Source: Cyanophora paradoxa CCMP329 (Eukaryota; Plantae; Glaucophyta). From it: a DNA stretch of 64,000 nt. Positions within the stretch are counted from its first letter, which is position 1. Every line of letters begins with the position of its first letter. Below, piece by piece: positions 6,140-15,967 of the stretch. A program made the translations under genes and the position numbers. The stretch covers positions 1 to 64,000 of the forward strand of contig QPMI01000244.1 of NCBI GenBank assembly GCA_004431415.1, in the 5' to 3' direction. The notes under the pieces are model-generated. The model ran no database searches and was not told where the DNA came from. It saw only the letters and a list, made by a program, of their open reading frames with translations.

Positions 6140-9100
6140 CTATGCGGCCTGGAGGGGCAGGCCGATCTCGAGGCCCTCCTCGCCCACCGTCTCCACCAGC
6201 ACGTACGCCTGCGCCCCACCGCCTCGCCGGCAAGCGGGGCGCCCGGGGCGGGGCGGGGGGGGCCGCACCGGGGGCCGGCAGGCGCAGGCGGGGCACACGG
6301 CGGCCGCCTCCTCCTCCGCCCCCTGCGCCCCTCTCAGAGGCCGAGGGGCGGGGCGCGGGGGCGGGGGCCGGCGAGCCTCCTCGACGGGCTCGTGGGCGCC
6401 GCAGGCGGGGCAGGGGGCGGCCTCCAGGAGCCCCCGAGGGCCTCCTCCGCCCGGCCCGCCGCAGGGCCCGCAGCAGCGCCCCCGGCCCCTCCCCAGCACC
6501 TCCACCGCCGCTCCGGGGCCCGCCGCCGGCCCCGCGGGCCCAGCACCGCCACCGACCCCAGCGCCTCCTGCCGGGGGCTGAGGGCGGGCGGGGCGGGGCG
6601 GAGGGGGCGGGGCGCACGACGATGGCGCCGCCGCGCCAGAGGAGGGCCGAGGCGGGGCCGCCCTTCGCCACCGCCACCGCCAGCCTGCCCCAAGCTCGCA
6701 CCGAGGGGGGGGGGGGGGGTACGGGCGCGGCGTCGCACCGGAGGGCGAAGTGCGGGGTGGGGATAGCGGGCCGGAGCAGGCGGCGGAGGGGCCGGGGGCG
6801 GGCCGCTGCGGCGGGTTGAGGCCGGGGAGAGAGCGGAGAGGGGTAGGGCGCACAGCGCTCGGCGGCGAGGCGGGCGAGGAGCGGTGCCCTGGCACGAGGC
6901 GTGAGCCGAGGCGGCGGCGGCGGCGGTGGGCGGGGCGGGGCGGGCGGGCACCGGGCTGGGGGCGCGGGCAGGAGGGCGAGGAGGACGGACCAGCCGGCGG
7001 GGCCGGGCAGGGCGAGCCCGAGCGCCTGCACCCAAGCCCCGCGTGAGCGCCGCCAGCCGAGTGGCCGAGGCGCGGGGCGCACGTGGGCGAGCGGGGCGGA
7101 GAGGGGCGGAGGGAGGGCCGAGTCGCGCAGCCAGGGGTCTTGCGCGGGGGCCCCCGCGGCGGCGGCGGCGCGGACGAGGGCGGCGCGGGCGGCGAGGAGG
7201 AGGCGCCCCGGATGCACCGCCGCCACCCCGAACTGCGCGCGCCCCGCGGGGGTCACGGGGAGGGAGACGGGGGGGAGGGGCGTGGGGGGCGGGGGGCGGG
7301 CCTGGGGCAGGTGGAGGCAGGCGCCCCACGAGTGGAGGGCCTCGAGGGCGGCGGGGCTCGCCGGGCCCGCCCCCGGCCCCCGCGCCGGCGCCGGCAGCAG
7401 GCCCCGCAGCTCCCGCGCCGCCATCGGCTGCACGCGAGGCCGTCAGACAGAGGAGAGCGCTGGAAGGCTTGAAGTGCGGGGCGGGGCGGGCGGGGCACCG
7501 GGAGGGAGCAGTGGCGGAGCTCCTCGGCGCGGCGGGCGAGGGCGACGTGCGGGGCCGCCGCGGGGCCGTCCCCGCCCCGCCGCCGCCCGCAGCAGCGCCG
7601 CGCGCAGCTCCGCCACGCCCGCCCGCCGGGCGCCGCCTCCACGCGGTGCAGGCGCAGCCCCGGCCCGGGCCCGCGCCTTGGCCCCGCCCCCTCCTCGAGG
7701 GCCGCCTGGGCAGCGGGTGGGGTCGGCGGAGGGCGGGGCGCGGGGCGCGGGGAGGGCCCGGGCGGGGGCGGGGCGGACGGCGAGGGCGGGGTCGGAGTCG
7801 GGGCGGGCGGCGGGGTCCCGGCCCGCGTCCCCGCCAGCAGCAGCAGCGCCCCCTCCCCGCCCGCCCCCGCACCGCCGCCAGCCACGCGGCGAGCCCCGCC
7901 TCCCCCGCCGGCTCCCTGCCGCAGCGTCACATGGTCAGGGCCCCGCGGCCGGCGTGCCGCGGAGGGGGGCGAGGGCGGGGGTACCGCGTGAGGTCCCACA
8001 CGAGGAGCACGACGCAGCCGGCGCTGAAGAGCGGGGCCGGCGGGGCCGGCGGCGACCCGCCCTCCTCCTCCTCCTCCTCCCTGCCGGCCGGCGTCTCAGC
8101 GGGGGGCGGGGCGGGCGGGGAGGAGGAGGAGGAGGGGAGGGCAGGCGGACCCCTCGAGCTCCCAGACGGCGAGGGAGAGGCGGGGCGGGGACTGCGCCCC
8201 CGCCCCCGCCGCCTCCCAGGAGCTCACCACCAGGCCCCCGGCCGCCGCCGCCGGCCCCGCCGCCTCCGGCCCCACCACGCTCCGAAGCAGCGCGCTCTTG
8301 CCCGCTGCGGAGGGGCTCGACGGGGGGGCGCAAGGCGGGAAGGGACTGGGGTCTGTGCGCACCGCCCTTGGGCCCCAGGACGAGCAGCTTGGCGCGGGGG
8401 CGGGGGCGGGCCGGCGCGGGGCGCGCTGCGGCTGCCGCCGGGGCCGGCGGCGGCGCGGAGGTGGCGCAGGATGGCGGCGTCGTCGGAGCGGACGTCGCGG
8501 GGCAGCGCGGCGAGCACGTTCCCCTCCGCCAGCCGCACCTCCCGCAGCGCCGGAAGCTCCCCGATCTGCCCCGCCGCTTCAGCGCGGAGAGGAGCGGGCG
8601 GGCCGGGGGGGCGGGCTGGGGGCGGGGGCGCCTGCTTGGGGAGGTCGAGGAGGAGGTTGCGCCCCGCGTGCAGCCGCTCCAGCGACGCCAGCCGCCCCAC
8701 CACCTGGCCCCGCCCCGCGTGAGGCCCCGCTGAGGCCCTCGCCGGCGGCGGGGCGCGGGCGGGCGGCACCTCGCCGGGGAGGGCGGCGAGGCGGTTGCCG
8801 GAGAGGTAGAGCTCCCGCAGAGCCGTCAGCGCCGCCACCTGTGACCGAGAGGCGCCAACGCTCAGCGATGAGGCGCCCCGGGGGCTGTGGGGCGGGATCG
8901 GGGCGGGGGCGGGCCTCCGGGGCGAGGTGGCTGATGCCGTTGCCGGCGGCGTTGAGGATGCGCAGAGCCGTCAGCTTGCCGAGCTCCTACGGCGCGCGGG
9001 GGCGGCTCGGCGGGCTTCGCGGCTGCCCGGGGCGGGGCGGGGCGGGGCGGGGACCTCGGGGAGGCGGGTGAGGAGGTTGCTGGGGACGTGCAGCTCCCGC

Positions 9101-10052
9101 AGCGCCCCCAGCGCCCCGATCTGCGCGGGAGGGGCTCGGGGTGGCCGAGAGAAGGGCGGGGGGCGGGGCGGCCGGCGCGCCTCCGGCGGCAGGTTCGTGA
9201 GGCGGTTGCCGGCGGCGCGCAGGGAGCGGAGGGAGCCCAGGCGTCCGATCTCCTGCGGCGGCCCTCAGCGGGAGGGGGGCCGGGGCGGGGCAGGGGCCGG
9301 GGCGGGCCGAGCGGAGGGAGGCGAGGCCGCAGCGGGAGCAGTCGAGGGCCTCGAGGGCGGCGAGGGCGTACACGGGCGGCGGCAGGCGGCCCCCCGCCAT
9401 CGGGTTCCCCGACACGTCCAGCCGCTTCAGCCGCGGCAGCGCCCCCAGCTGCGCCCCGCACCGCCGCCTCACGGCGCGCGCCGGCGTCGGGCAGGAGGAG
9501 GGGGCGGGGACCTCGTCGGGTAGGGAGGGGAGGCGGTTGCAGGCGAGGTCGAGCTCCTCAAGGGCGACCAGGCGCCCCACCTGCCGGCCCCGCCCCCGAG
9601 GTCGGCCCGGAGCCGGCTCGAAGGGGGGTGCGAGGGGGCGGGCGAACGGAGGCGGGGAGGGCGTCGAGGCGGTTGCCGGGGGCGCGGAGGGCGCGGAGCG
9701 ATGCGAGGTCGGCGAGGTCCGGGGGCAGGGCGGCGAGGCCGCAGCGGGAGAGGTCGAGCAGCACAAGGCCCGGGGCGAGGGCGGCGAGGCCCGCGGGGGG
9801 CGCCCCGAGCCCCGCGAGGTCGTTGTCCGCCAGCAGCAGCTCCCGCAGCGCCCCCTGCGGCGCCCCCAGCGCCGCCGGCCAGGCCGCGAGGCCGGCGCGG
9901 GAGAGGTCGAGCCGCCCGCCGGCGTCGGGCGCGGCGGGGAGGGCGAGGGGCCGGCAGGAGGTGCTCGACCGCGAGGTCGAGGCCCGCGACGTCGGCGGGC
10001 GCCCCGCCCCGCACGCCAGCGCCGGCAGCTCGCGCCCCACCGAGCAGCCCAT
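6140..10052 (-). CDS. Roco-type protein: LRRs + Roc GTPase + COR-like region
   Basis: Many LRRs (LRELLLADNDL, LEELDLACNRL, LKRLDVSGN, LRELYLSGNRL). Spliced P-loop RAKLLVLGPKG/AGKSALLRSV, then LAVWELEG, VVLLVWDLTR, LLLLAGTRA, and COR-like ALEALHSWGACLHL. Start MGCSVG is tentative because an acceptor-like AG precedes it. Confidence 0.75.
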
Positions 10053-10967
10053 CTGCCGCGCGTGAGGCCCGAGCCTCCCGATCCGAAGGGAGCCACTGGG
10101 ACGCCCGGCGAGCGCGGCACGCCGGCCCGGCGACGGCGTTCCTCTGGGCGCACCGGAACGCTGCAGCTGCGAGGTAGTTGCGCACTGAGCCGGTAGCTCC
10201 CGGTGCAAACGCTGCGGAGAGTGGTTTGAGCGTCGCTCAAGCGCCGCACCGAGAGCGCTGGCACAGGCACAGGCGCCGGCGCACCCGATGAAGTGGATAT
10301 CAGCAGGAGCAGCAGCAACTAGCTACACCAGCATGCGTACGAGGTCTGGCAAATGATCGCCAACTAACGATGTCAAGTCCCTTTCTGCGCCGGCTCGAGG
10401 CGCCGCCGCTCGGCTCCAGTCAATACTGAGCGAAAATTCAGATCCTTGGGAATCGCTCTCCCGCGCGGGCTGCGTGTTGTTGATGCTCTTCCGAGCCCGT
10501 AATGGCGCACGTACGGCGGCCGGAGGCCCGGCGTCGGGTTTTCGCATCCGCACGCACAAATGCACTGCACCCCCCCAAGCTTCGTCCCCCCCTTCCCGAC
10601 CTTCCCTCGTTCCCGGAGCCGTCGCGCGGCGCAGGTCGTGCAGCCCAGATCGTCACCACAGCAAGAGGCGATACAACTACTCGCTTCCCTCGCGTGATTG
10701 GGAGCAGTATCGGCGGCAGGTCGAAGCTCCGGACGCGCGTTGCTGCCGTTTCGACCCGCGGCGCAGCATTCGTTCGGCTTAAATTATATCAGCGTGAGCC
10801 GGCGGTCACCGCGGCCGACGCGCAGCCCCGTCGAGCCGGAGCAGCAGCTCTCGAGAGCTCGAGCCCGGTTCTCTTGTCGGAGGGGCGGCCAGTGGCGAGG
10901 CGAGGCCCGGCCCAGTTTGCCATCGAATCATTTGAGCATCGCTGAACGAGTGCAGCTCGCTTGCGCG

Positions 10968-13900
10968 ATGGCCCTCCCCCGGCTGGGAAGCCTCCGGTTC
11001 CTCGCCGCCGCGACAGCCGTTATGGTCGCGTGCCTCCTCGCGGGCGGCGCGGCGGCCGAGGAGCACTCCCACCCAGCCGGCCACTGGCCCCACGGCCGCG
11101 CGCTCCACGCCGACCCCGCCCCCGCCACCCCCGCCACCGCCACGACCAGCCCCGCGGCCACGCCCCTTCCCCCGATCCGTGCGCCCGCCGCGCCCCGCAC
11201 CCCGCGCCTTGCCTCCCTGCCCCGCGCCGTAATCGCGACGGGAGCGCGCAGGGCCAACGACGCGGTGCAAGGCGAAGCTGCCGGCGGCGCTGCAGCGGAC
11301 CGCGGCCGGCAACAGCACGGCGAGGCCGCAGAACATGAGCCCGAGCAGGCGCGCCCCGGCCCGAGGCCGGCTCCCGCGGCGCGCTGACCTGCAGCAGGTG
11401 TTGGCGCTGATCGCGGCGGGCAGCCCGACGTTCGTCGACCCGCGCTTCTCCACCCACCACTGCATCGGCGCGCCCCCGCCGGCGCCCCCCGCCGGCCCCG
11501 CCCCGCGCGCGGGGGCTCCGGCGCTGACGCCCCGCGGCCTCGCGTGCAGACGGGCGGCACGAGGCCGGGGGCGTGCACACCCCCGGGGGCGACATCTCCG
11601 AGTTCCTCCTCGCCCTCGCGGGGTACCAGGAGGCCGCCCTCGCCGGCGCTGCCCTCCCCGAGGCCCACGTCCGCGTACCCCGCCCCCCCCCCCCCACACA
11701 CACACACACCTCACAGGGGTACAGGTGTACGAGGCGATGGTGGCGTTCATCGACGCGTACGCCGTTCCCGGCGAGGCGCGCAGCGTGCCCCCTGCGCCCC
11801 TTGAGCCTCTCGCCCTGAGGCCCCCGCAGCGCCCCTTCTACATGCACACGGACCACCGCGCCGACGCCGTCCGCTCTCTTTGAATCCCGCCGCCGCCGCG
11901 GCCGCCCCGCCCGGCAGCGCTCTGACCCGCGGGCGGCGGGGCGCAGCACATGCGGGCGGCGGCCGGCGTGGACGCGGCGTACAGCTTCCGGGGGGCGCCC
12001 GCCGAGGACCGGGACCGCCTCCTCGCCCTCGCCACCGACCCCGAGGCCGTCGGTGACCGCCACGCGCCCCCGCCCCGCCCCCGCTCGAGACCTGACCCCG
12101 GGGCGCCGGGCAGGCTGCGGGCACCTCAAGCGGACGCTGCAGCACCCCGACGTGTACCGCACGCCGGCGGCGCTGACGGCGAACGTGCTGCGGGCCTTCT
12201 GGCGGGCGCTGTGGCGGGACGCCGACGCCGGCACCGGCGCCGTCCTCCTCCACACCCTCCACGACGACGCCGACGAAGGGTCCGCGCGCTCCGCTCGGGG
12301 GGGCGCGCGCTCTGCTCGGGCCAGGCCTGAGCGCCGGGCGCAGGGCGATGGTGGTGGTGACGGGCGCCGCGTGCGGCGACTCGGTGATGACGTTCAACCC
12401 CAAGGTGGCCGGCATGGGCCAGGCGCGCCCTCGTCCCTCCCCCGCCCTCGCCCGCTTCTGTGAGCGCTCTGAGGGGGCGGGGGCGGGGCGCAGGTGCTGG
12501 TGTACCAGCCGGAGGCGCCGGCGCACCTGCGGCAGACGCTGGCGCGCTTCCTCTGCGACCGCCGCCCCGCCCTCGCCGCCGACGCCGCCTGCTCGTTCGC
12601 TCTGCCCCGCCGCCGGGCCTCGTGCGGGGGCGATGGCGGGGGCGGGGGGGCAGGGCGGGGGCGGTGCGGGCGGCGATGGAGAGGATCTTCGCCGCAGGGC
12701 TCGCCAGCACCGTCGCGTGCGCCCCCCCTCCCCCCCCCCCCCCCCCCCCCCTCCCCCCTCCCCACCTCAGCCGAGCCGGCTGCCTTGTGCCGGGGGCAGG
12801 GCGGCGGCGGCGGACCGGCCGCAGGACAGCGTCGTCGCTGCCGCCGAGGCGCCCTTCGCCGGCGTGCGGACCGCTGAGCCGGCCCCTCCGGAGAGCGCCG
12901 CGGCGGCCGCGGAGGCGGCGTACGCTGCGGCGGGGGGCAACACGGGATGCGCCGGCACCCTCGTCACCGCCGACGCGCGCCCCGCCCCGCCCCCCCTAGG
13001 CCTTCGCCGACGTTGACGAGCGCTGACGGCCGGCCTCGCGGGCAGACGCTGGCGGGGTCGAGGGCGAGCTCGGAGACGTGGCGCATCCTCTCGCAGCCGC
13101 AGGCCGCCGCCCTCACCGCCGCCGGCCCCGCCTTCGTCCCCGTCGACGGCCACACCTGGTCCTGCATCGGTGGCCCCGCCACGCCGCGCCCCCCCCCCTC
13201 GCCACCGCCCCTGCTGACGGCGGGGGCAGACGGGCGGTCGCAGAAGGCGGTGCTGGGGACGCCGGGCGGCTCCTTCTCCGAGTTCCTCCTCGCCCTCGCC
13301 GGCCACCTCCGCGCCGGCGTCCGCCCCCGCGCCCCGCCCGCCCTGCCGCCCTCTCTCCCGCCCCGCCCCGCAGCTGACCCGCCTGCCGGGCGGCATCGCA
13401 GCTCGTGCTGCCCGACGAGGACACGATGCAGGCGCTGCTCGACGCCTACGCCGCCCAGTACGCCACCCCCTTCTACCGCCAGGTCCCGCGCCCTTTCCAC
13501 TTCTTGTAGTCCACGCCCCCCCTCGAAGCTGAGGCTCCGAGCAGGTGTACATGCACTCGGACGCGGCGGCGGTGAAGGCGCTGGCGGCCAAGCTCGGGGT
13601 GTCCTCGCTGGACCTGGCGGCCCCGCCGGCGGCGCTGCGGGCCCGCGTGCTCGCCCACGTGGCGGACCCCGCCTACATCGGCTGCGAGCATCTCCGCCTC
13701 ACCCTCCAGGCCCGCCCGCCCCCTTCGCGGGCCGAGACCTGCAGCCGCCTCCGCCTGAGGGGCGGCGCAGAAGCCCGAGGTGTACGGGATCGATGCCAAG
13801 ACGGCCCAGTGGGCGGTCCGGGCCTTCTTCCGCGCCCTCTGGGCCGACACCGCCCGCGGCGCCGGCCGCTTCGCCTTCGAGGCCCGCCCCGCCCCGCCCT

Positions 13901-15967
13901 CGCCCCGCCCCGCGAGCTCGAGTTGGCGGCGGGTGAGGGGGCGGGGGCGGGGGCGGGCAGGTGCTGGAGGGGGCCCACGTGGAGGGCGCCGTGCTCATGG
14001 TCTCCTCTGGCGGCTGCCCGGGCCGCGTCCGCCCCCGCGCCCCGCCCCCGCCCCGCCCCTCCTCCTCTCTTCGAGCGCCCCCCGCGCAGACGGCAGCCAT
14101 TGCGCCGATGCGCCCGCCGCTGGTCTGGGCAGCGCCCCCGCCCTCGGCTCCGGCTCCGTGCGCGCCCCGCCGCCCCCGCCCCGCCCCCGCCCCCGCCCGC
14201 GGGCGGGCCGGGCGAGCTCGAGCTGGGGCGGGGCGGGCAGGCGCTGGTGTACCACTACCATGACATCACGGGCCTCCGCGACTGGAACGCCGAGGCGCGC
14301 CCTGCCGCCCCCGCCCCGCCCCCTGCGCCCCCACGCCCCCGTGCCGAGGCGGCGCGCGGGGCAGTTCTTCACGGAGTGGTTCAACCCGCGGCTGGCCAGC
14401 CCGACGGCGGGGGCCACGCGGGCCGCCCTCCGCTCCCTCATGGACACCATCTTCGCCCCGCAGGCCCGCCCCGCCCCGCCCCGCCCGCCGCGGCGCGCCC
14501 CGCCCCGCCCCGGCGACCCGATATTAATCACCCGTTCCACAGCTGGGATCGACGGCGCCGGCGATGTCCTCGGGCCTGCCCCAGTAGTGCGCCCGCGCGG
14601 GGCCGCGCGGCGGGGCCCGGGCGCGGGCGCGGGCGCGGGGCGCTGAGGGCGGGGCCGTGCAGCTGGGCGATGGTCTCCGCCTCGTCGGACGCCGCCCTCC
14701 TCTCCGCCCTCGCCGCCGACCGCGACGCCGCCTCCGGCCCGCCCGCCCGGCCCCGCCCTTGTCGCTGCCCGGCCCCGCTGAGGGGCCGGGGCGCAGGGGT
14801 GGCGGCGGGGAGCAAGGGCGGGGCGGAGCTGGTGCTGCCGGGCTACTCGTGCAGCAGCTTCACGAGGGCGAGCTTCGACGCCCTCAAGGAGGGCATCGCG
14901 GGGCGCGCCCCGACCCGCCGCCCAACGCCGCCGTCCGCCCCCGGCCCGCGCTGAAGCCCGGGCAGGACGCTGGGGATCGGCGCCTCGCGCGTGCTCCTCA
15001 GCCGCCTCCGCTGCGCCCTCTACACCAAGCCCTTCCCCGCCGCCTCCCGCCGGCCCGCCCCGCCCCGCCCCGCCCGCCTTGCCCGAGCCAAGGCGATGGC
15101 GACGGGGGGCGCAGGCTGCTGGCGGAGGCTGCGGCGGCGTCCTCGGGCTCGGGCTCGGGGGCGGGGGCGGGGGCGGGGGCGACAGGGACGCTGGTGCCGG
15201 CGGTGGGCGTGGAGCTGCTCGCCCCGGCCGCCGGCTCCGCGGAGAAGGGCCTCACCGAGGCCCTCGCCGCCATGAAGGCCGCCACCTCCCCCGCCGGCCT
15301 CCTCTCCCTCCCGTGCCCGCCCCGTCCCCCGCCCGCCCTCCGCCCCGCCCCCCCCCCCGCCCTCACGCACACGCCCCCGCAGCGGCGGCTTCGTGGCCGA
15401 CGTCGCGTACCCCTCCACCGCCTCCGGTGCGCTCGTCGGGGCACTTTGAAGCCAAAGGCTCGCCCCGCCCTCCCCCGGGGCCTCGAGCGGGGGCGGGGCG
15501 CATGCGCAGGCGGGGACGGCTCGATCAAGACGGAGGCGTGGCTCATCCCCTCGATCTTCGTCGGGCTCATCGCCGTCACCGTCGGCTCCCTCGGCTACGT
15601 CAAGCGCTCCCAGCAGCAAAGGCCTGCCCCCGCCCCCTCCACGCCCTGTCCCCTCCGAGGCTCGGCCCTGACGAGGGCGGCGGCGCGCAGGGAGAGGCGC
15701 AAGGAGAGGGCCGAGCAGGAGCAGAAGCTCGGGGGCGCCTTCCCCGCCATCCCCCTCGTCGTCCCCGGCGCCGGGGCTGCCCAGCCGCCGCCGCCGCCGC
15801 CGGCCCTGCGCCCCGCCACGCCGCGCGGGGCCGCGTACAAGGCCGTCGACGTCGACCTGGACGGGCCGGGGGGCGGCTTCGGCCAGCAGGCCGCCCGGGC
15901 GGGCGCGGCGCGGGGCCCCGGCACGCCCCGGGGAGTCCAGTTCCGCGAGCCCCACGACTTCGTCTGA
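10968..15967 (+). CDS. Type-I membrane protein with signal peptide and two tandem carbonic-anhydrase-like (Cys-His-Cys; zeta/CDCA-like) domains
   Basis: Signal peptide MALPRLGSLRFLAAATAVMVACLLAGGAAA. Domain 1: HCI/DGRHEAGGVHTPGGDISEFLLAL..FYMHTDH..VG/CGHL. Domain 2: SCI/DGRSQKAVLGTPGGSFSEFLLAL..VYMHSD..IGCEHL. TM helix WLIPSIFVGLIAVTVGSLGYV followed by a basic stretch; stop at 15965-15967. Confidence 0.75.

Follow-up and report, generated by a model that had tools for sequence, protein, structure and literature searches.

In this study, we analysed a stretch of 64,000 nucleotides from the glaucophyte alga Cyanophora paradoxa CCMP329 (NCBI GenBank assembly GCA_004431415.1, contig QPMI01000244.1, positions 1 to 64,000 of the forward strand; hereafter the window), focusing on a gene at 10968-15967. 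Our best explanation, which we hold with moderate confidence, is that this gene encodes a type-I protein of the cell surface whose two domains have the fold of the zeta-class carbonic anhydrases (CAs) and would hydrate a heterocumulene; its metal, catalysis, substrate and location are what we infer from the combined evidence. To our knowledge, the zeta class contains a single structurally characterised protein, the diatom enzyme CDCA1, and is regarded as a diatom speciality. The CO2-concentrating mechanism (CCM) of glaucophytes is poorly defined. If our reading is true, the zeta class would be widened by a distant sister family that shares its fold and catalytic constellation and is present in glaucophytes, other protists and bacteria, and the window protein would offer a tangible, clonable candidate for the external CA of the glaucophyte CCM.

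An AlphaFold model was made from an alignment of 27 domains for residues 90-400 of P0003, a paralogue whose domain 1 is approximately 90% identical to domain 1 of the window protein, and all fold comparisons given below for the CA-like domains refer to this model. Its predicted local distance difference test score (pLDDT) was 89 and its predicted template modelling score (pTM) 0.88. The six best matches of a Foldseek search against the PDB were all repeats of CDCA1, the Cd/Zn CA of Thalassiosira weissflogii (E from 3e-4 up to 3e-2); E was 0.25 for the match that followed. VIA-align superposed 179-182 of approximately 210 residues on CDCA1 with a root-mean-square deviation of 3.3-3.6 A and Z 11.4-11.8 (next Z 3.0), and when the model was compared exhaustively with 48,161 representative PDB chains, CDCA1 stood alone at Z 11.5, the next value being 3.6. 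Since CDCA1 was the sole strong match in all three comparisons, the fold assignment was considered specific; the likeness to CDCA1 that the initial annotation had proposed from motifs was thus borne out at the fold level. Judged from where the structural alignments start, C33 (family numbering, used throughout for such residue labels) lies no more than two residues from C473/C263 of CDCA1.

The codons of the predicted metal-binding and dyad residues were located as follows, the slash marking a splice junction.

11461-11463, forward strand: first Cys of domain 1 (C33, TGC) in HHCI/DGR; the split Asp codon lies at 11467 and 11550-11551, and the Arg codon at 11555-11557.
11845-11847, forward strand: His of domain 1 (H97, CAC) in FYMHTD, with D99 at 11851-11853.
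12116-12124, forward strand: Cys-Gly-His of domain 1 (C141, TGC; G142; H143) in GCGH.
13163-13165, forward strand: first Cys of domain 2 (TGC) in WSCI/DGR, again with a split Asp codon.
13554-13556, forward strand: His of domain 2 (CAC) in VYMHSD.
13683-13691, forward strand: Cys-Glu-His of domain 2 (Cys TGC) in GCEH, with Glu (13686-13688) where the near-invariant Gly is expected.

Frame translation and a codon check confirmed all six ligand codons previously suggested at about 11461, 11845 and 12116 and at about 13163, 13554 and 13683, and the motifs CIDGR, TPGG (TPGGD in domain 1, TPGGS in domain 2), M-H-(T/S)-D and GC(G/E)H were found in both domains as described. After splicing, His and the second Cys are spaced 44 residues apart in domain 1 and 43 residues apart in domain 2, in line with the long spacing of about 40 claimed before, and the model places two inserted helices in the segment between H97 and C141. 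Among 30 domains from glaucophytes, other protists and bacteria, C33, D35, R37, H97, C141 and G142 were invariant or near-invariant; CIDGR with its Asp-Arg dyad, present in both window domains, was near-invariant, and the Cys-His-Cys triad and CxDGR dyad named by the initial annotation proved to be a family-wide feature. Domain 1 contains all eight of the family-invariant residues Y95, H97, D99, G140, C141, H143, Y154 and E194; in domain 2, E194 is encoded on the exon at 13961-14024. A homologue from Incisomonas marina (P0032) has lost C33, H97, D99 and C141 together and kept D35, R37, H143 and E194. Such joint loss is expected if the four residues form one site, and P0032 is likely a pseudoenzyme, to judge from its residues.

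In the third repeat of CDCA1 the metal is bound by Cys473, His525 and Cys535, the metal-bound water is held by Asp475 and Gly536, a conserved Asp/Arg dyad is present as in beta-CAs, the spacing from His to the second Cys is 10, and Phe537, which follows Cys-Gly, lines the CO2 pocket; the enzyme also hydrolyses carbon disulfide (CS2) via carbonyl sulfide (COS) (PMC8217695). The order C473, D475, H525, C535 corresponds to C33, D35, H97, C141 of the window family, with R37 at the position of the dyad Arg. Like the window protein, CDCA1 carries tandem repeats within one polypeptide, and its structures (PDB 3BOB, 3BOH, 3UK8, 7BEZ) were the only PDB match with the same fold (Z 11.5-11.8). It differs in domain length (approximately 210 residues against approximately 300, so that the window-family domain is about 90 residues longer), and the window protein has in addition a membrane anchor, a SEA-like domain and a tail. 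For the invariant Y95, D99, H143, Y154 and E194 and the near-invariant H192 and H226 of the window family, no CDCA1 counterpart is stated.

Beta-CAs share the Cys-His-Cys metal site and the CxDxR dyad, but their fold is different (Z 3.1-3.4 only in the 48,161-chain comparison), and the window family lacks their HxxC motif, the two ligands being 43-44 residues apart. Members of the beta-CA family include a COS hydrolase and a CS2 hydrolase, in which the substrate has switched from CO2. LCIB and the theta-CAs likewise have a Cys-His-Cys site and belong to an algal CCM context; however, no LCIB structure was among the listed fold matches, and LCIB proteins are soluble and plastidial whereas the domains of the window protein are predicted ectodomains. 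The earlier suggestion of a distinct subfamily held, the family being set apart from CDCA1, beta-CA and LCIB.

A profile built from exon pieces was searched against 1.84 billion representative sequences and recovered eight proteins, six of which were true relatives, all of them EukProt models of Cyanophora paradoxa or Gloeochaete. A further profile search gave 20 proteins, with homologues down to E 1e-156. The relatives include single-domain proteins from MMETSP (one of which starts with MGC, suggesting lipid anchoring), metagenomic eukaryote-like proteins and a bacterial clade. By a profile match along the entire domain, the window domains belong to an unnamed CxDGR/FYMHTD/GCGH family of glaucophytes, other protists, Planctomycetota and other bacteria. 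In the tree, bacterial and eukaryotic clades were separate (100/99), glaucophyte domains were monophyletic (100/97), and both Gloeochaete domains clustered with the Cyanophora D1 type. Among the paralogues in the same genome, P0003 has two domains and P0001 and P0002 have four; the leader, His-rich stretch, D1-D2 unit or units, transmembrane (TM) helix and SEA-like domain are shared. Gloeochaete P0026 has the same design of leader, His-rich stretch, D1-D2 unit and TM helix. The window copy is 69% identical to P0003 overall; its domain 2 keeps H192, where P0003 has Arg, and it carries a 17-residue insertion before domain 1 that P0003 lacks. Our literature search found no paper on CDCA-like or zeta-CA proteins in Cyanophora or glaucophytes, on the rhodanese link described below, or on the window family.

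From the N- to the C-terminus, the protein is organised as signal peptide, His-rich stretch, domain 1, Ala/Pro-rich linker, domain 2, SEA-like region, TM helix and tail.

10968-11057, forward strand: signal peptide MALPRLGSLRFLAAATAVMVACLLAGGAAA, read from the sequence; P0001-P0003 have a similar leader.
11058-11114, forward strand: His-rich stretch EEHSHPAGHWPHGRALHAD, immediately after the leader and in the same place in P0001, P0002 and P0003.
11395-12827, forward strand: domain 1 (predicted zeta-CA fold, D1 type), on approximately 10 exons; approximately 90% identical to P0003:90-400.
13073-14586, forward strand: domain 2 (predicted zeta-CA fold, D2 type), homologous to domain 1; approximately 90% identical to P0003:431-750.
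14799-15428, forward strand: predicted juxtamembrane alpha/beta domain, a region approximately 140 residues long and containing two invariant Cys, which in an AlphaFold 2 (AF2) model resembles SEA or other membrane-adjacent domains.
15536-15601, forward strand: TM helix AWLIPSIFVGLIAVTVGSLGYV, followed by the basic cluster KRSQQQRERRKER; read from the sequence and from RNA joints 15425/15509 and 15619/15689.
15836-15847, forward strand: YKAV, a putative YxxPhi sorting motif, followed by acidic DVDLD; P0003 keeps YKSV-DVDLD.

The signal peptide, His-rich N-terminus, TM helix and cytosolic tail (approximately 98 residues) reported by the initial annotation are all present. As had been proposed, domain 1 and domain 2 are truly homologous: both are approximately 300 residues long, their exon pieces are 52-55% identical to each other, and the two domains of P0003 match each other at phmmer E 1e-40. 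The AF2 model of the juxtamembrane domain had a pLDDT of 68; its top matches were the SEA domain of MUC16 and other membrane-adjacent domains at a middling Z of 7.5, and many RRM-like folds followed at Z 5-7. The signal peptide, the TM helix and the positive-inside rule together support the suggested type-I topology, with both domains extracellular or lumenal. The product is probably a membrane glycoprotein of type-I topology that passes through the secretory pathway and most likely resides at the cell surface; the likeness of its juxtamembrane domain to those of surface proteins agrees with this. The YKAV-DVDLD element (15836-15856) has the look of a sorting signal that combines YxxPhi with an acidic cluster.

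The GC content of the region is approximately 80%, and scanning of all six frames revealed long, spurious open stretches in every frame, so that raw open reading frames (ORFs) mean little here. Translation in the three forward frames gave short coding pieces hopping between frames across 10968-15967. The gene structure was resolved as follows.

10968-15967, forward strand: entire coding region from ATG to stop, with approximately 27 exons and 26 introns, from an exact protein-to-genome map, tblastn and spliced RNA contigs.
11468-11549, forward strand: GC-AG intron, phase 1, splitting CI/DGR of domain 1; the joint 11466/11549 (a shift of ±1 is possible) occurs in RNA contigs of three runs, probably from paralogue mRNA.
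13170-13229, forward strand: GT-AG intron splitting the Asp codon of CI/DGR in domain 2, from the codon check.
13961-14024, forward strand: conserved exon VLEGAHVEGAVLMVSSGGCPG (VLEGAHVEGAV...), which carries H192 and E194; 73% identical to P0003, E 9e-10.

The public model P0033 (tig00001033_g6486.t1, 1067 amino acids) matches 10968-15964 residue for residue in 27 blocks and is therefore the model of the window gene itself. Full-length analyses were done with P0033 and with P0003. Introns are 54-83 nt long, and approximately 10 of the 26 have GC donors (G/GCGCGCC or CAG/GCCCGCC). Contigs from three runs were treated as RNA since introns were skipped in them, and those identical to the window fell into three blocks: 12800-12974/13046-13168; 14367-14453...14796-14901/14965-15042; and 15192-15312/15383-15425/15509-15619/15689-16100. 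As these contigs skip introns and are identical to the window, the gene is expressed and spliced; it is real, spliced and transcribed.

The Asp codon of CIDGR is interrupted after its first base, at the same position and in the same phase, in both domains, as a tandem duplication predicts. The initial annotation had stated that the key motif is split by an intron and missed by ORF-level searches, and it had called for transcripts joining CI to DGR. The former applies to raw ORFs; in the public gene model the two halves of the motif are already united. As to the latter, the joint 11466/11549 is present in RNA, but it carries letters of P0003, as do the joints 11342/11425 and 13318/13414 (for example, inserted letters coding LVVA). 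The RNA contig with this joint probably derives from P0003 mRNA, so that the domain 1 CI/DGR junction has been directly seen only in the paralogue; for the window copy, the evidence is the public model together with homology. For domain 2, the window-identical contig stops at 13168, with 21 more letters unplaced.

Some local features of the gene deserve mention. P0033 is flawed in domain 2, where it skips the exon at 13961-14024 and reads through 13885-13960. In the next exon, at 14090-14157, the first half matches P0003 in one frame and the second half in another; this loop, in the stretch 13771-14240, has therefore either diverged from the paralogue through compensating indels or been misassembled. 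The 17-residue insertion relative to P0003, SRRAPARGRLPRRADLQ, lies at 11343-11394 directly ahead of domain 1, where RNA depth is low; no frame-keeping GT/GC..AG intron fits there, and the insertion is therefore probably coding in the window copy. Many introns contain a CTGAC branch-like box, and a short (CA)n run occupies 11693-11709 in the intron following the TPGG exon. RNA folding of the intron splitting CI/DGR gave nothing notable (z 0.75).

On the explanation we favour, the ectodomain would consist of two tandem domains of about 300 residues with the CDCA1 fold, each with a predicted Cys-His-Cys metal site, probably for Zn, and an Asp-Arg dyad that would activate the metal-bound water as in beta- and zeta-CAs. 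The mechanism would most likely be attack of the metal hydroxide on a small linear heterocumulene. For an algal ectoenzyme the default substrate would be CO2/HCO3-, with COS or CS2 as an alternative or additional one. The His-rich N-terminus may aid extracellular metal loading, the enzyme would be held at the membrane by the SEA-like domain and TM helix, and the YxxPhi tail could serve adaptor-mediated sorting or recycling.

Several findings weigh against a hydrating enzyme of this kind, beginning with the sequence searches. Pfam gave no match at E<=10 in the 27 domains and none for full-length P0003, P0001 and P0005; NCBIfam gave no assignment for exon pieces or full-length relatives; and phmmer and hmmsearch against PDB sequences gave no match at all, the similarity to CDCA1 being undetectable by sequence profiles. 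In the active site, the spacing from His to Cys is 10 in CDCA1 against 43-44 with two extra helices in the window family, and an invariant His (H143) stands in place of the pocket Phe537. Further invariant polar residues hint at other chemistry. Near-invariant H192 and H226 are Ala and Gln in domain 1, and G142 is Glu in domain 2, departing from the Gly of both CDCA1 and the family. The family also occurs in heterotrophic bacteria, which weakens the interpretation as a CA or as part of inorganic-carbon uptake, and in a bacterial clade a rhodanese of the MoeB/MoeZ type precedes the domain in a fusion protein, at the following loci.

L001, 5241-9464: bacterial rhodanese-fusion locus.
L003, 5497-6924: bacterial rhodanese-fusion locus.
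L004, 4491-6910: bacterial rhodanese-fusion locus.
L005, 5192-7344: bacterial rhodanese-fusion locus.

The contexts of these fusions belong with the same objections. The bacterial gene for P0016, whose rhodanese catalytic loop CRSGRRS is intact, lies in an operon after genes for a persulfide-dioxygenase-rhodanese fusion, YeeE/YedE-type transporters and TauE. In three of the four Isosphaeraceae contexts read, the fusion lies directly downstream of a MobA-like gene; one of these contexts has two MoeA genes and one an aldehyde:ferredoxin oxidoreductase (AFOR) gene. The related-loci search with a four-sequence bacterial alignment gave two Isosphaeraceae loci. In the Isosphaeraceae fusions, including that of Singulisphaera sp. 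PoT, Ser replaces the rhodanese catalytic Cys; in Singulisphaera the upstream ORF has no Pfam match, and genes for CBS and cystathionine gamma-lyase lie two to three genes upstream. None of the bacterial contexts read was CO2-related, and together they point to sulfur or molybdenum-cofactor trafficking.

Other searches with single pieces were also negative: Pfam on ten exon pieces gave no match, phmmer against the PDB with two exon pieces gave noise only, a single exon submitted to an ESM Atlas feature search had no match at or above 0.9, an Atlas fold search reached a TM score of 0.32 at best, and a word-based protein search with the stop-free read-through of exons A2 and B2 gave no match.

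Taking the bacterial and algal members together, we put forward, as a tentative proposal only, that the family may represent a ninth class of Cys2His metallo-hydratase, zeta-related but separate, whose bacterial members would work with rhodanese-type sulfur or molybdenum-cofactor trafficking, and whose multiplied two- and four-domain surface proteins in glaucophytes could be the missing external CA, or a COS/CS2 hydrolase, of the glaucophyte CCM.

Because no CO2-related context was read, CDCA1 itself hydrolyses CS2 via COS, and COS and CS2 hydrolases exist among the beta-CA relatives, a substrate that is a sulfur analogue of CO2 is a serious rival. In this case the domains would hydrolyse COS, CS2 or a related thio-compound, releasing H2S and CO2, and would not be physiological CAs; we consider this rather doubtful as an account of the window protein. 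The bacterial rhodanese fusions, and P0016 with its intact loop beside sulfur genes, speak for it, as do the CBS and cystathionine gamma-lyase genes of Singulisphaera and the replacement of the pocket Phe by an invariant His, and the fusions raise the alternative that hydrolysis of sulfur analogues of CO2 was the ancestral job of the fold. In the Isosphaeraceae fusions, however, the rhodanese catalytic Cys is replaced by Ser, and the gene conserved next to them is MobA-like and not one for sulfur oxidation; the algal proteins have no sulfur-related partner, and an external CA would be obviously useful to a freshwater alga.

The presence of at least eight invariant polar residues outside the CA constellation suits another possibility, that D99, H143, Y154, H192, E194 and H226 serve a different reaction in which the Cys2His metal is part of a larger active site and the likeness to CAs is confined to fold and metal site. 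The absent Pfam and NCBIfam assignment and the heterogeneous contexts, none of them CO2-related, with molybdenum-cofactor genes and an AFOR gene, fit this too. We regard it as unlikely: the full beta/zeta-CA constellation including the Asp-Arg dyad is kept, a pattern difficult to account for unless water is activated at the metal, and no alternative substrate is indicated.

It is improbable that the protein is a non-enzymatic surface receptor or scavenger that binds or senses metal, for which its His-rich N-terminus, Cys2His sites and endocytic YxxPhi tail would be suited, or a pseudoenzyme. Its receptor-like architecture with SEA-like domain and sorting motif, the dead homologue in Incisomonas, and the altered near-invariant positions (H192A and H226Q in domain 1, G142E in domain 2) would agree with this; yet despite these departures triad and dyad are intact in both window domains and in all glaucophyte paralogues, and the catalytic core, approximately 90% identical from one paralogue to another, shows strong constraint. 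Chance motifs in GC-rich DNA or a pseudogene, conceivable from the long spurious ORFs in six frames at 80% GC and the mis-spliced stretch in the public model, are refuted by spliced transcripts identical to the window, a frame-consistent 27-exon model and homologues to E 1e-156.

Pfam analysis of the other long ORFs of the window returned no match besides a weak one to LRR_1, in an LRR-like ORF that lies upstream of the gene on the opposite strand (8987-10318, reverse strand).

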